From NCBI GenBank assembly GCA_021613535.1, contig CP075496.1, positions 2,418,001 to 2,482,000 on the forward strand: a stretch of DNA of 64,000 nucleotides, written 5' to 3'. The number at the start of each line of letters is the position of its first letter. Within the stretch, counting starts at the first letter, position 1. The notes under the pieces were generated by a model. That model saw only the letters and a list, made by a program, of their open reading frames with translations. It ran no database searches and was not told the origin of the DNA. Position numbers and translations under genes: made by a program. Shown here in pieces: positions 32,860 to 41,362 of this stretch. The DNA comes from Adineta vaga (taxonomy: Eukaryota; Animalia; Rotifera).

Positions 32860-34157
32860 TATCATGAAAACAAAAGTCAATTAATATTTGATCGTTTGAG
32901 TCTCTTTGTGTGCGTGTATGTATAAGAATTACCACATACGATCTCATTTGTTTTTCTTTCCTTCAATGTCTTTTCTTCTTCTTCTTTTTTTTTACTTCTT
33001 TTTCTTTCTCTTTCTCTGGTGAATCGATGTGCTATGTGATTCTTCGTTATTTTTTGTTTTTGTTTGCTTTCAAAACTTTCTTGCTGTGAATCAAAGATAT
33101 ATTAATAAAAGAGAACCGATATGAGTCTGTATAGAAATATTCAAAAATAAAAAAAACACAAACATATTTTATCTTTCCTAATAAATAACTCTTATATCAT
33201 ACATACATTCAGATGTCAATAACAAGTCGATTTGTAGACTATGTTGAAGGACATAGTATCTAAGAAAAAAAAATGAATCATTCTCTATCGTTGAACTTTC
33301 ATTGCAACCAAAAAACAAAAAAAAACTTCAGGTAAGTTAAAAATAGCAAGCAATTTGCAATATCTTTGATTGTATTTGTTCTTAAAATAGCAAAGAACAA
33401 CAACAATTGAGAATAGATGAGTTAATCGAAAATAATTGCGACATTCGATTATATGTCAATATTTAATCGATTGGTATTTTTTCTTTTTCATTTTCAACTC
33501 AACCAACTTTATTAAAAGAAAAAAGAAAACTAACTAATGTAATGTAATATATAGTGTTTTTTTCTCCTCTTCTTCTATTGACATTTCGGAGTTTCATTGC
33601 CGGATGTAGATTATTCAGAAGATAAGAACTATTTTCTTCTTTTGTGTACATATATATGTATATAAATATATTGATCGTATCAATAACCTTTACATGTTTT
33701 TTTTCCTAAAGACGTCATTTACCTATTGACAAGATACAAAATCTATCAATCACCTATTCGATGCGTTATTACACAAAAGTAAATGTTTATATAAGGTTAG
33801 TATAGATGTTTTCGAGTAAAGTATGAAACGAAAAAGAAAAATAAGAAGACCTATCGAATTTGGTCATGTACGTGTTTTTTCATTCGTATAAATTGTTTTC
33901 CTTTAGTAATAAGAAGTACCTTGCAGGTACAAATATTATTAGAAAAAACAAACTTTATAATTTTGTATATAAATATCCTGCCTCTCAAAAATATTCTCAT
34001 TTCAGTCTTTTGATATCTTCAGTTAAAAAGTTCGACCATTAATTGATATTTGTCAATCGATTTCTCTTTATTCTTACTTATTACGTTCTTTCTTTTATTT
34101 CTCATCTTTGTATATTAGATCAATATTTAAAAGGGTATATGTAACCAAACGACATTG

Positions 34158-37100
34158 ATGATTATGCGACGACATTCGGTAGATCCCGAGAGTATAAAAA
34201 AACAGATTATCTCTGTGTTCACTACATCATCACGCAAACGTCAAAATTCAACAACAACACCAACAAACAATCGAATTCTAAGTTTTACTCGATATACACG
34301 ACGTTTTAGTGTTCCTGATAAGAAATATTCGGATACATCCTATCCTAATGCCGAACTTCATACAATTAAAGAGGTAAGTGAACTGCTGATCATTCTAACA
34401 TGCTTGCTGTCTGCTTTGTAAGCTTAACTGCGTCATCTGATTAGCATAGCATGAAAATTGCATGCGCAAAATTCGTTTTGTCCTCTCTCTTCCTTTTCTA
34501 TTCTCTCGAGGAGTCATTAAATTGGTAATGATCATCGACATTTGAGTGGAAGTACTTCTATTTGTGTAACACTCGAATGTCGAATAAGACACAGCAGAGA
34601 TCAAACAAAACAACAAAAGAAAAAGATGTTTTTGTTTTCTCTATTCGAAAAAAAAAACATTCGAAAAGAAAGTTTATTAAAAAAACATTGATGAAATTTT
34701 ATTCATGCCAATATTATTAATAGAAGAAGAGGACTCCAACAGAACGGAGAGAGAAAAAAAATTAATTAAATAAAAATGATCCGTAAAATGAGAATGCTCA
34801 TTGACAACAATAAATAAAATGAACTACCCAAGTCTATGATTGTACTTACTGATGTTAGTGTCATCGATAAATAGGAATTCTCTCGGTTTTTTTTCTCTAC
34901 GCTCACATTCCTTTCTTCTTCTTCTTCTTCTTCGTTTTTATTCGAGATGAGAAAAATATTTTTAGTAATGACGACAAAAGACGCCAGCAGGCAAACTTTT
35001 TCTGCCTGCTCTAACTGACAAGAAAGAGAGTAATGGTGTTCGGATGTGAAAAAGAAAAATGTATAAAGAGAAAGAGAGAATGAAGGAAAAAAAGCGAGAT
35101 GAGATTTACAAATGCTGCTTAGTAAACCAAAAATATTCAACGCGGGTGGTGCATTCGTCTAGATAGATTTGATTAACGTCTTACGGTAAAATATCCGGTT
35201 TTCTTTTAAATTTTGTTTGAAAATGACGGGTGAGAGACGAAATACTCTCTTTGCACCTATAAATGGATTTGATTTTACAATAAATGATCGAACACGACGA
35301 TATTCGACACCTGATAAACAAGATCTTGAAACAATCTATGAGGTAAATATGAAAATATTATAATTGAAACGAGGAACGATTTCTTTATCTTTCCTTAATT
35401 ATCATGTGGTTCAGAGGTTATTGTCTAATCAATGAATCGAAAGATTTCTATGCTCATTACATTCTTTACTATTCAAATAGAGAAACAAATAAGTTGTTTT
35501 TAGTAATTATAAGATGAAGAAAGGTATATGTATAATATATTTCGCAATAGAAATCAAAATGATTCATATTCAATAAGGAAAAAAGTTGTACTTGAATGTC
35601 AAATTCCTATTTGAGATCATTAATCATACCAGAATCAAATAGTTCTTCTTTGTTTCTCATGAAAATGTATAATAGATCTATCGAAGAAAAGTTCAAATGA
35701 TCTTAATCTTTAGGTTATTTATGAGTATTCATAATCAATCTCGACAATCTCTTAAGATTTGTCGAAAACTATTTAATTTTAAAACGGAAAAATCTCGATT
35801 GATATTCTTTAACTTGATTGTCAATTAGATTTCCTTCGATTTATCCTATTCAATTACTAAATACGTGATTTTTTTCCAATCGAATATATACGTTGTCCTA
35901 CATTTGTCAAGTATTCGAACTAGATTACATTAGCATAATATAGAACTCTATTCTGTTGTTCTACGTATCTCGAAGACAACATCTACAATTCATACAAACT
36001 AAATCATGCCTGATGGAATATAGTTTGTCTTGTAAGCTTTAATAGAACGCTCAGTGTTTAATCTGTGAGAAATAAAGTATTTATATATGGTATGGAAAAC
36101 AACATACCTATATGATGAAATATTCACGTGCATCGCACGAGAACGACATTGTTGAGTGTCGAGTAAATAAATGCATTGTTCACATGAGAATAGAGAGAAA
36201 ACATATTTTTTTCTCTATTTTTATTAAAATGTCAAATATAGACTAAAGACAGAAAGCATCGTTATTATTTCATGTCTGTTATACATTTTTATCGATATAA
36301 ATAGAAAGAACGAATATCAAATGAAAGAAATTTTCCGATCGATACTTCTGGTGAGAATAAATTTGCTTTTACTTTGTTGAGTTAAACGATGAATGTATGC
36401 TCTTTTCTATGCGCGGAAGTGTGTATGTGTGAGATTACTAGTGGAATTTTGAAGAAAACCATTGACGTCATACGTTGAGATATGAGTCACATACTATGAA
36501 TAATAATTGTAGCAGATAGAAACACGTTCATTACGCAACAGTAAAACGTATGTTTTTTCGTACTGAAAATTTCGATTTTTATCTTGTATTCTATTCGTCA
36601 TTTCGTCAATTAGGTTAACCAAAAACTGAAAAAAATATTGATGTTATTTTCATTATCATTGTACGAACAGGTGACGTTGATTGATGACGATTATTGATAT
36701 CCATGTTTCTCGAACATCCTTTTCAATGTGTATATATGTGACCTTCTAACATCAAGACATGACGTGTATGTATATGACTCGAGTGAGCTGTATTCATCTT
36801 TCTTTCTTTATAGAACTGCTTTTCCATCATTCTTTTTTTTTCGTCAATAATATTTCCTTTACTTTCTTTCTCTCTCTCTCTCGCCTTCTTTGCTTTATTC
36901 TTCTCGTTTGTATCGTTGTTGTTAGCAGCAGTAGTAGTAGTAGTATTAGTAGTTCGAGTGCAAGTAATAGACAGAAATTCTTACGAAGTGAGAAGCAAAA
37001 GAACTTTTTTTTCCTTTTTGTCGTTTGTTACATGTATGACAGTCTAAAACGATGTAATGAATGAAGCAACGACTAACATAGAGAGAAAACGGGATGTCTA

Positions 37101-38010
37101 GATAGATGTATGTGCGATATAAACGAAAGGAGAGAAAAAATGCACCCGGTTTTTTTCCCATCACACATATTTTATCTATCCTTTTCGAATTTGCAATCTA
37201 TTGACATCCAAGAAGGAAAAAACGAGAACCATTGGAAGTACGACTCGTGACTTGCTTTATGAATCAATAAACTAAGAACAGGAAAGAGAAAAATGTTGTG
37301 TTCATTCTATTTTCAGATAAAGAACAGCATTTTATTGACATTTTTATATCTTTGAGAAAGAACAAAATGAAAAGGAGAAAAACAATGGTATATATCTCAA
37401 AGGTTTCGTATTACAGTATGCAGATTTTTTTTTGTCCAGAAATTAGAAGACTCACGTCTCTTCTCTGCTTCTTATTTAAAAATTTGATTTTTTTTTCTCT
37501 TGTTCTGCTTAGGTTAAAGGATTTTAGTCAAATGATAATGATAATACGAAATGAGAGAGAGAGAAAGCGAAAGAGAACGAAAAAGGAGGAAGAAGAATAC
37601 GAAGACATCAATCTTCATTCATAAGATAGAGGTGACCCTCATCGATTCTCCTAATTGAACAATTCAGTTGGCTGTATATCAAAATCGATGAAAACGAAAT
37701 ATGATTAGTTTAGCTTTCATTTCGTTCTCTCAATGTTCATCCGTCCATCTTTACTTTCTATTTACGTTTAAAAGCAACAGAATGAAACGTATATCAAAAG
37801 TATAGATTTATATATACATATGCGAATAGCGTATATATATATATATATACATTTTTTTCTCTTTCGTTCGTGCGAGAATAAGCAAGAAGAGGCAAGTACA
37901 AGAATGCGTCATAGTCTCCATCATCATTCATTCAGTCAGTCATTTCTCTTTTTTCTTCTTTTTCTTTTCTCGCCGCATTTATAGACGCGAGTATTGAAGG
38001 TACGGTTGCT

Positions 38011-38041
<31 letters not shown>

Positions 38042-41000
38042 ATTGTAATATAGTTTTTTTTTCGTTTTAAAGAAAGAAAAAAACGAGTGGGAATACGTTT
38101 TCCTATCACACTATTCATCTTATCAGACATTTAATTCTTGTCTATCATATAACTCATGACAACAAGTGACTATCCAGTACGAACGTCAGTTTTACTCGAT
38201 ACGGTACATGAGCATGATCATGAACATGAACATGATATGAATCATGAAATGGATCATAACAGTTATGCTCGACCAATGGTAAGTTTAGAAGAAGAAAAAA
38301 CGAAGAAAATTCTCATTGAATAGAAAATGATTTGAGAATAGATTGAAAAAGTCGAACTATTTTCTTTATATAATATTTAGAATGAAACGAATCCAATAAC
38401 AACAACTGGTACAGATCAAACTGATTTAGATCGATCAATTTCACCAACTAAAAATAATTCAGATGGATCATCGAAACTATCGCGTATTCAAGCTGTATTT
38501 CTCTCACGCAGTAACGCAAATGATAAAAAACCTAATACAACATTAAGTAATGCTGTTGGAGTATTATCTCATCCAACCAATAGTACGTCAGGTCCAGGTG
38601 GAGGAACAAATGGAACTAATGAAATTAGTGAACATTCCAATGTTGTTGCTGCCCTTGCTCAACATGCAAGTGCAGCTATACCTGTTGCTGCATTAGTGGT
38701 ACCATCAAATAAATTCCAAGTGACAAGTGCAAATACGTCAACACTCGCGCCTTCCTCCTCCACCACGTCATCAGCAGCAAAACAATTTCTTATACGTCGT
38801 GTTCGTTCACGTTCTAAATCGGATCCTCAATCTGTACCTGATAAATCACTTTTTTCAAGATTTTTTCCAAAAAAAAGCAAGAAACCTTTACCAACATTAT
38901 TAACAACAACATCGAAATCAATTGAAACACATTCCAATACAAATCATTATAAGAAAAGACAAACTGTAAATAATAATCTCTTAACAGCAAACTATTCCAA
39001 TTCAAATACATATGATGACGATGATGACGAAGAACTTGATGAACGAACTGTTTCAACTGGTTCATTGTCAGATAGTGATCAACGAAATCATAAAGATGGA
39101 AGAATCAACGGTGTACGAAGTTCGAATACGACACGTGGTGGAAGTCGAACAAATAGTGGTAGTGGAAAAAATACAAGTGCCGGTCCAAATGCTCTTTCAT
39201 TACCAACATCAGATTCACAATATTACGCATCATTATCATCGGCACCAACGGGTTATTCAATTTCGTATCATAAACGTATGACAAAGGGTAACGATGATCT
39301 TCGTATCCAAGCAGCACTTGGTCGACTTCAACAGCAGAGTAAACAAAATACGACAACAGGTGATGGCACAAGTCAATTAATGGTATGCTTCTTTATTTAA
39401 ACAAAAAATATATAGTACATGTTCATTGTATTTATTATTTGGCATAACATTCTTTCTTTTCTCTTTCAACCTACTCTTTCATTCATTCATTCATTGTTGT
39501 CTCTAAATGCTCGATAGTATAGTTGCCTAGTCAATTATTATTGGCAAAGATCCAACATGAGACACGACCGAGGAAAAAAAAGTCGGCTAGAAATAAAAAA
39601 AAGAAGAAGGAAAACCGTTCTCTTCTACAATTTTGCTTGCTTATGCGCATGCTTGCTTAATTAATATTCATATTCCGGCTTTTTACGTCTGCTTCAATTG
39701 CTATCGTACTTATTTTATTATTATTTTTTTGTCATTTTAGTCACTCTTTCAAGATCCGAAACGGAGTGGTAAGATTACTTTTCATATTACTTTTCAATAT
39801 TTTATTTCCATGTATCTATGTAGGAGCTCAAAGTCCAAATCATATGAGTGGCGGAACTCGTGTTAGTAAAACACTATCTGGTCAGACAATAATCACCAGA
39901 AATAGTTCGTCAGATCGACCATCGACCTATTGTATACGTCCAACAGTATGTTTCTTTTTCGATTTATATTTTATTTTTCTATTAAATTTATTTTTTAGTC
40001 AAGTTCACCGATAAATGATACAGATGAAACATTTAGTAAGACAACTTCAAAAACGATGTCATCGTATTAATGAAAAGATCATTTTTTTTCAGTCAGCAAT
40101 GATGAAGTTTATACTCATTTTATGAAAAATCATACATGTTATGATATAATGCCGAAAAGTTCTAAACTTGTCATTTTCGATACCCAATTAGCAGTGAAAA
40201 AAGCATTTTATGCACTTGTTTACAATGGTGTACGTGCTGCACCATTATGGGATACGAAACGACAAAAATTTACGGGAATATTAACAATAACAGATTTTAT
40301 TCTTATATTAGAAAAATATTATAAAGAACCTAATGCAAAAATCGAAGAACTTGAAGAACATCGAATTGAAACATGGAGAGAAGTTTTACGAGAATATGAA
40401 AAACCATTATTATGTGTAAAACCAACGGATAGGTAACTATAATATACATAAACATGATGTAAATAGAAAATTTTCTTTCTTCTTCTTAGTTTATTCGATG
40501 CTGTTTGTATTCTCACAGAAAATCATGTTCATCGTTTACCGATTATAGATCCAGTAACGAATAATGTCGTTTTTATTCTTACACATAAACGAGTATTACG
40601 ATTCTTTTATTTATACGTACGTAGCAATCAATTTGACATTTGTTATTATTTCCGAAGTTTCGATTCGATCTTTAGATCTATGATTGGCCACAACCAGCAT
40701 ATATGTCGAAAACATTAGAAGAACTTAATGTTGGTACTTATGATAATATGCATATTGTATGTAAAGAAATTGTTGAAGGATTTTTAGAAATAAAAAAAGA
40801 AACAATTCATTTTTAATTATAGATTCAAGAAGATACAACAATTATTGAAGCACTTAATGATTTTGTCAAATATCGTGTATCAGCATTACCTGTTGTTGAT
40901 AGTCAAAGAAAATTAGTGAATATTTATTCGAAATTTGATGTTATTGTAAGTTTAATAGAATAGGTTTTTTTCCGAATTTTATTATGCAATAAATCGTTTC

Positions 41001-41362
41001 TTTAGGGTTTAGCAGCGGATAAAACATATACAAATTTAAATATGACAATAAAAGAAGCATTATCTTTTCGAAAAGAACGTTTGGAAAATGTTGCTAAATG
41101 TTATAAAAATGAATCCTTATCGACATGTATGGAACGTATTGTTAAAGCTGAAGTACATCGTTTAGTTGTTGTTGACAATGATGATCATGTTATTGGTGTT
41201 CTTTCCTTATCTGATCTACTTTATTATGTTGTTATACGACCAACAAAAGTATCACGAGCAGGTACAATAGCTACAACACCAATGCCTATGCTTGTACCAA
41301 CGATTAGTGTCTCAAATGAAGATGGTCCTGTTGAAGATGAAGCAATAGAAAACACTGATTAA
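34158..41362 (+). CDS. PRKAG: AMP-activated protein kinase gamma subunit (PRKAG2/SNF4Agamma-like, long N-terminus, alternative first exons)
   Basis: CBS exons [45 protein letters not shown]...[42 protein letters not shown] large S/T-rich exon spans 38381-39382. Candidate first exons at 34158-34373, 35223-35342 and 38156-38278 all end in phase-0 GTAA donors. Confidence 0.9.
38011..38041. repeat. (AC)n(AT)n microsatellite upstream of AMPK-gamma exon C
   Basis: Direct reading of acacacac followed by an atat run; another (TA)n run lies at ~37832-37849. Confidence 0.85.

Follow-up and report, generated by a model that had tools for sequence, protein, structure and literature searches.

The subject of this analysis is a gene for the gamma subunit of AMP-activated protein kinase (AMPK) in the bdelloid rotifer Adineta vaga. 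It lies in a window of 64,000 nt (GCA_021613535.1, contig CP075496.1, positions 2,418,001 to 2,482,000, forward strand); all coordinates below are those of the window. With high confidence, this is a long-form AMPK-gamma gene, one of an ohnologue pair and found bdelloid-wide, with three alternative N-terminal cassettes (A, B and C), each of which carries an LxxIxE-type island under selection. On balance, we think that this island probably docks the B56 form of protein phosphatase 2A (PP2A) and so builds a link between kinase and phosphatase into the gamma subunit. We favour B56 because the island fits the known pattern, is conserved, is nearly identical to a validated motif and has its partner present in the same genome. 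An earlier note, made from the letters alone, had proposed that three alternative first exons, chosen by promoter, each bring a PP2A-B56 docking motif to AMPK-gamma; that proposal is partly supported, with changes to exon C and to the splicing of exon B.

The ten-exon gene occupies 38381–41362 on the + strand. Pfam matched CBS domains on the translations of four of its exons, in keeping with the four tandem CBS motifs of the family, and exon e6 matched human AMPK gamma-1 chains in the PDB with an E value of 1.6e-48 and yeast Snf4 with an E value of ~1e-18. Judged by these matches, the gene is an AMPK gamma subunit gene of the SNF4/PRKAG family, and the cassettes belong to it, as the earlier note had said. 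The window has a G+C content of ~30% and the introns are short. The exon model of e2 to e10 was read from a three-frame translation and the exons were searched one by one, the sole join being a local reading-frame check described below. The large shared exon e2, which follows the cassettes, had no Pfam family, and Pfam searches with exons A and C gave no match either. Relatives of e2 found by HMMER search numbered 23 proteins, bdelloid-type wherever named. The long N-terminal extension is predicted to be disordered: for the B-type protein of A. steineri, AlphaFold2, working from an alignment of just 8 sequences, gave confidence scores (pLDDT) of 21–39 over residues 1–425, of below 50 for the region homologous to e2 and of 56–84 for most of the CBS core (~residues 531–730).

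The three open reading frames upstream of e2, with their start codons, peptides and GT donors, lie exactly where they had been reported (Table 1). The hexamers LHTIKE (A), LETIYE (B) and LDTVHE (C) all match the ELM pattern DOC_PP2A_B56_1, which is [LMFYWIC]xxIxE or Lxx[IVLWC]xE. To follow the motif across species, a profile of four A exons was used to collect 48 distinct A-type exons from bdelloid genomes and metagenomes. These matches are short products, most of them the exon read straight into the intron and a few of them short models with unrelated tails. The sequence L-x-[T/P/A]-I-x-E ends 46 of the 48 exons, most of which read on through the translated GTAAGT donor; when A exons were shuffled, the terminal motif appeared in 0.1%. 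In exon B, L-[E/D]-T-I-Y-E is present in every case examined, and the longer K-Q-D-L-E-T-I-Y-E is invariant in both A. vaga copies, A. steineri and Rotaria sp. Silwood2. The C motif is kept in all loci examined except that of Rotaria sp. Silwood2. The hexamers of cassettes A, B and C are LDTIDE, LETIYE and LDTAQE in Rotaria sp. Silwood2 and LDTIDE, LETIYE and LDTVYE in A. steineri. Didymodactylos carnosus has LDTIYE in B and LEAIHE in C, the latter followed by a His-rich run; its exon A was not found within the 2 kb available upstream of B. The L, I and E columns are invariant in A and B between variable flanks, and are conserved as far as D. carnosus. The conservation in related species that the earlier note had named as a check is thus borne out.

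The motifs are beyond chance, on the evidence of the shuffles set against the 46 A exons and of a shared exon that, over its 334 residues, holds no LxxIxE-type motif. The idea that all three are functionless matches to a loose six-residue pattern does draw on the degeneracy of that pattern, which occurs ~0.06 times per shuffled A exon, but it is contradicted by the retention of the motif at a fixed position across the deepest bdelloid split and by its absence from e2. We consider it extremely unlikely.

The arrangement of the cassettes is as stable as their motifs. A search of the A. vaga assembly (100.8 Mb in 6 contigs) located the ohnologue on contig C1, with 60% identity over the shared exon and with counterparts of A, B and C in unchanged order, bearing LGTINE, LETIYE and LDTVYE-M; the exon blocks are the only parts that can be aligned between the two ohnologues. 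The order A, B, C, shared exon holds for the ohnologue, for Rotaria sp. Silwood2 and A. steineri and for those environmental contigs that cover the whole stretch; among the four named bdelloid species in which the arrangement recurs, D. carnosus shows only B, C and the shared exon. Scanning metagenomes with the B motif as seed returned 17 loci, in which B is ascertained by the seed and A and C are independent; every contig of sufficient length has A, then B ~1.1–1.3 kb on, C ~1.5–2.8 kb further and the shared exon beyond. In a second, more distant AMPK-gamma-like ohnologue pair (C5:8837747–8837974 and C2:9769894–9770118), identity over the first CBS exon is 47%. A B-type cassette was not detected in the vicinity of this pair, and within the A. 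vaga genome the B cassette is restricted to the two long-form gamma loci.

We conclude that purifying selection acts on the peptide itself, because the Leu, Thr, Ile and Glu codons of the motif differ synonymously between loci (CTT/TTG, ACA/ACT, ATT/ATC/ATA, GAG/GAA) and because the C motif lies 66 nt inside its exon in the window gene, a distance at which splice-site constraint cannot explain it. An RNA-level signal, such as exonic splicing enhancers or a 5′ splice-site context that guides the choice of first exon, might otherwise account for the conservation: the A and B motifs abut their donors, a conserved GCATG-rich intronic element lies just past the A donor, and synonymous divergence in exon B is low (pS 0.20–0.35). 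However, the codons change while the residues do not, the C motif is well inside its exon in D. carnosus as well as in the window gene, and three cassettes that otherwise do not resemble one another have one peptide pattern in common. An RNA signal as the whole cause is therefore very unlikely, while RNA-level constraint may add to the conservation of exon B. Outside the islands the exons change quickly: dN/dS (the ratio of nonsynonymous to synonymous divergence) over whole cassettes is 0.34–1.04 and not clearly below 1; the argument is therefore built on the motif islands rather than on whole exons. The comparison describes the cassettes as fast-evolving linkers with conserved islands; across bdelloids the best conserved are R-R-x-S-x-P, found in A and B, and the LxxIxE-type motif of all three cassettes.

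One pointer to B56 comes from exon B, whose LETIYE is one conservative residue away from LETIFE. The core [L/F]ETIFE of Tantalus and PRR14 has been shown by experiment to bind B56-alpha; replacing F by L makes binding tighter, and B56-alpha no longer binds when the glutamates of the motif or its own R222/R226 are mutated (PMC7272351). Variants of the A motif (LDTIDE, LHTIPE, LHPIDE) resemble the B56 motifs LSTIDE of RacGAP1, LSPIPE of Repo-Man and LSPIIE of BubR1, as cited in PMC6317279. A. vaga has four B56 loci; the stretch forming the binding pocket is identical to human B56-gamma at 40 of 43 positions (matching, among solved structures, chains of 5K6S and 5SWF), and the equivalents of Arg222 and Arg226 are kept. 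Membership of the Tantalus domain family was also considered and rejected on score. Pfam Tantalus (PF15386) matched residues 25–40 of exon B with 16.4 bits against a gathering threshold of 32.8 bits, and this match is confined to the last 16 residues of the exon (profile positions 26–41, 16 of 57 positions). Other B exons scored 12.3–12.4 bits or did not match, and A exons did not match.

A conserved L-x-T-[I/V]-x-E could also be functional with a partner other than B56, either another reader of short linear motifs or the AMPK complex itself through an intramolecular contact among alpha, beta and gamma. The tie to B56 is a sequence pattern; Thr at position 3, conserved in at least 70% of A exons, goes beyond what the B56 consensus demands, and one C exon tolerates Ala at position 4. 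Against this, the B hexamer is one conservative residue from a B56-alpha binder that itself has Thr at position 3, the natural variants all stay within the published consensus, and the acidic or Glu-rich residues after the motif fit known enhancers of affinity (PMC7272351). A different partner is, in our judgement, unlikely, although it is the alternative that we take most seriously.

In A and B, a second conserved site stands upstream of the motif. As the earlier note had observed, A and B share a site of the type RR[FY]S[VT]PDK, which reads RRFSVP in A and RRYSTP in B. The pattern R-[R/P]-x-S-x-P is present in 48 of 48 A-type exons, and the four A and B exons that were aligned show no variation at R, S or P, in agreement with the consensus R-x-x-pS-x-P. 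The distance from the Ser of R-R-x-S to the Leu of the motif is 16 residues in 38 of the 48 A exons. The site fits the consensus of basophilic kinases together with that of 14-3-3 mode-1 binding and, given its fixed spacing to the motif, would be the simplest candidate target for dephosphorylation. Further sites in the extension and the activation loop of the alpha subunit could also be targets. Exon C has no basic Ser-Pro site and instead has a His/Asp/Glu run directly after its motif. The positions compared for this run are 38213–38257, L012 9270–9350 and L004 ~2616–2675; the run is found in the window copy, its orthologues and D. carnosus, and is absent from the C1-type ohnologue lineage. 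Since D. carnosus and the window copy share it and the C1-type copy does not, this distribution marks the run as ancestral and lost once in the C1-type lineage; its presence in D. carnosus rules out a lineage novelty.

How the cassettes reach the shared exon was examined with assembled RNA contigs from four runs over 33700–39450; such contigs drop minor isoforms. Run X1 is cDNA and yielded one 2944-nt contig composed of 35233–35342, 38073–38278 and 38381–39382, continuing into exon 3. Here exon B is the 5′-most part of the contig, yet it is joined to exon C rather than to e2, at an acceptor (38071–72) upstream of the C start codon and not at 38381. Run X5 has the joint 38278|38381, as well as a contig end at exactly 38072, as might be expected where the assembly graph branches. 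The L006 transcript (Logan SRR22100215), from a related species, starts with 30 bases that align to 37970–37999 and continues at the equivalent of 38073, giving the layout leader, C, e2. This leader, C0, was not seen in A. vaga's own RNA contigs. The acceptor at 38071–72 in the RNA contigs and the leader junction in L006 together make exon C an internal exon with a non-coding leader, which rules out its earlier description as a first exon. Of the junctions to 38381 predicted by the earlier note, that from 38278 is present in X1 and X5, that from B is replaced in the window gene by a junction to 38073, and none of the spliced contigs contains exon A. Run X6 covers 34235–34479 unspliced at a depth of ~2. 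Run X7 reads through the e2 donor unspliced and must therefore derive from DNA or pre-mRNA, and its piece at 34297–34330 belongs to the ohnologue. Another contig of X1 shows 2 mismatches against exon B and has loose ends that map uniquely to the ohnologue; in that gene, the splice leads from a B-like exon straight to the beginning of the shared exon and keeps the frame.

The local frame check showed that in the B-C-e2 mRNA the frame opened by the B start codon runs for 68 codons and ends with a TGA at 38157–59, on the C start codon at 38156–58. The resulting ATGA overlap is a layout known from termination-reinitiation sites. It is thus conceivable that A and B of the window gene are upstream open reading frames (uORFs) or micropeptide genes and that the only AMPK-gamma protein starts at the C ATG. 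Besides the X1 contig, the missing A or B junctions to 38381 in the window-locus RNA contigs argue for this, as does GenBank, where exon A is entered as a hypothetical protein of 75 residues in its own right (I4U23_017900, a 100% match to exon A), made by splicing 34164–34373 to a six-codon mini-exon at 34511–34528. However, the equivalent stand-alone models in A. ricciae have unrelated tails, for which reason I4U23_017900 looks like an artefact of gene prediction. Moreover, the RNA run that gave the B-C contig also shows the B-like exon of the ohnologue joined in frame to its shared exon, the phase-0 ends of A and B are kept in every species, and the extension of the frame into exon C is not kept in L006, where a stop follows after 3 codons. 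With minor isoforms dropped from the contigs as well, a purely upstream role for A and B seems improbable, somewhat more so than a partner other than B56. In the window gene, B may act mainly as an upstream ORF, and a minor B-e2 form may exist that is compatible with the contig data.

Several observations weigh against three alternative cassettes that all dock B56. The sole B-containing mRNA contig of the window gene includes exon C and so encodes no fusion of B to AMPK-gamma, and spliced RNA with exon A was not found in the four runs over the region searched. In other species, the proteins that join A or B to e2 are gene predictions; a search for a transcript-derived protein joining A to e2, made with residues 1–110 of P0002, returned P0002 alone, itself a gene prediction. 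In the C exon of Rotaria sp. Silwood2 the Ile/Val position is occupied by Ala, a change expected to abolish B56 binding, and 2 of the 48 A exons have no motif. To these are added the low synonymous divergence of exon B, the whole-cassette dN/dS values, the small alignment behind the disorder prediction, and full-text literature searches in which no link between LxxIxE and AMPK-gamma was found.

Taken together, the data can be arranged in the following scheme. At its 5′ end the gene would offer a choice of three units: A and B, each a coding first exon, and leader C0 spliced onto exon C. When A or B skips exon C and joins 38381, its phase-0 end would yield an A- or B-type N-terminus; with exon C in the mRNA, the A or B frame would stop at the C start codon and a C-type protein would be made. 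The motif of each cassette would dock a PP2A B56 subunit onto the N-terminal extension of AMPK-gamma, placing the phosphatase beside the phosphosite of the cassette and near the rest of the AMPK complex, and the choice of cassette would set the kinase input that opposes it. PKA or 14-3-3 input, a function of the His run as a sensor of metal or pH and a role in desiccation are put forward as hypotheses. The most extensive form of the scheme holds that every long gamma isoform carries a B56 dock and that the cassette gates the phosphatase, through the kinase/14-3-3 site at its 16-residue spacing in A and B and through the His-rich run in C. If exon C is included, A and B would become free micropeptide uORFs, possible decoys for B56, and the switch would play a part as the animal enters and leaves anhydrobiosis. 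We regard this most extensive form as improbable.

Table 1. Features of the AMPK-gamma locus (window coordinates).
Feature	Position	Strand	Remarks
Conserved stretch upstream of exon A	34055–34163	+	putative promoter and 5′ untranslated region (UTR) of A isoform
Exon A, coding cassette	34164–34373	+	conserved ATG 34164; extra in-frame ATG 34158; MRRHS at start, RRHS 34167–34178; RRFSVP 34299–34316; LHTIKE 34356–34373; donor GTAAGT at 34374, phase 0
Conserved intronic element 3′ of A donor	34374–34470	+	GCATG words
Conserved stretch upstream of exon B	34929–35222	+	putative promoter and 5′ UTR of B isoform
Exon B, coding cassette	35223–35342	+	ATG 35223; RRYSTP 35295–35312; LETIYE 35325–35342; donor GTAAAT at 35343, phase 0
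C0 non-coding leader, 3′ end	37970–37999	+	donor GT 38000–01; placed from related-species transcript L006
Exon C, internal	38073–38278	+	acceptor AG 38071–72; ATG 38156; LDTVHE 38195–38212; His/Asp/Glu run 38213–38257; phase-0 donor 38279
TGA closing the B (or A) ATG frame upon exon C inclusion	38157–38159	+	overlaps C ATG (ATGA)
e2, large shared exon	38381–39382	+	334 codons; without Pfam family; acceptor AG 38379–38380
e3	39741–39768	+	three-frame translation; X1 contig (2944 nt) extends into e3
e4	39824–39945	+	three-frame translation
e5	39999–40035	+	three-frame translation
e6	40093–40432	+	three-frame translation; gamma-1 match
e7	40490–40616	+	three-frame translation
e8	40676–40756	+	three-frame translation
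e9	40823–40945	+	three-frame translation
e10	41006–41362	+	three-frame translation; includes stop

The flanks of the cassettes bear on the proposal that promoter choice selects the N-terminus. Nucleotide similarity to the environmental orthologues L019 and L020 begins at 34055, upstream of exon A; other species have in-frame stops in this stretch, which is why we regard it as non-coding. Across 34929–35355, around exon B, identity to the same two orthologues is ~72%. The ohnologue alignment blocks are shorter, that of A reaching 34418 and that of B beginning at 35202. The region upstream of the C0 leader is conserved among closer orthologues, as are the 100–300 nt upstream of A and B, and these conserved regions fit three promoters. 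Promoter choice is put forward as a hypothesis: A, B and C0 each have a conserved upstream region, exon C is internal, and B is spliced to C in the window gene. The intronic element past the A donor has the arrangement GCATG..TGTCTGCTTTGCTGC..TTGCATG in most of 10 aligned bdelloid loci and contains words of the Rbfox type, (U)GCAUG; it may control use of the A donor. The leader exon is flanked by (TA)n microsatellites at 37833–37851 and 38010–38041, the second inside the 73-nt intron from leader to C. Within e2, which is otherwise variable, two islands are nearly invariant: one at 38795–38887, basic and Ser-rich, in which a third copy of S-V-P-D-K precedes a run of K-K-S-K-K-P, and one at 39209–39280, Tyr/Ser-rich and ending in H-K-R-M.

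AMPK is switched off through dephosphorylation of its activation loop, and to our knowledge the recruitment of phosphatases to the AMPK complex is still poorly defined. If our reading is correct, a docking motif borne by gamma would be a concrete and easily tested mechanism of recruitment, present in all three cassettes across an animal class. The B-C mRNA, in which a motif-bearing frame ends on the main ATG, would also be a case of exon inclusion switching a sequence between fusion protein and uORF. Bdelloids survive desiccation, and AMPK and PP2A are implicated in the anhydrobiosis of tardigrades: in Hypsibius exemplaris, induction depends on AMPK and on PP1/PP2A (Kondo et al. 2015 and 2019, as cited in PMC9224920). 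The two systems are alike in linking AMPK and PP2A in a desiccation-tolerant micro-animal. They differ in that the evidence given for H. exemplaris is pharmacological and phosphoproteomic, with no AMPK docking motif described.

The general design of the gene has precedents. Mammalian PRKAG2 and PRKAG3 and Drosophila SNF4A-gamma have long isoforms with variable N-terminal extensions that arise from alternative 5′ exons. The rotifer gene resembles them in placing a core of four CBS motifs behind a long, predicted-disordered extension whose start is set by the 5′ exon, and differs in that its extension and cassettes have detectable relatives among bdelloid sequences only. It differs from any AMPK-gamma in the literature searched by its putative LxxIxE-type docking motif. 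For the motif, exon B ends in LETIYE much as the Tantalus, PRR14 and PRR14L proteins carry [L/F]ETIFE at their core (PMC7272351), although the likeness is one of a short motif and not of domain homology. BubR1, Repo-Man and RacGAP1, as cited in PMC6317279, share the six-residue pattern, which in them stands in a disordered region near phosphosites, as it is predicted to do in the rotifer; unlike theirs, the putative rotifer dock belongs to a regulatory subunit of a kinase and is present three times, once in each of the mutually exclusive cassettes. AMPK-gamma subunits with alternative N-termini and short linear motifs for B56 are thus both of known kinds, and what is new is their combination, not previously described in the literature searched.

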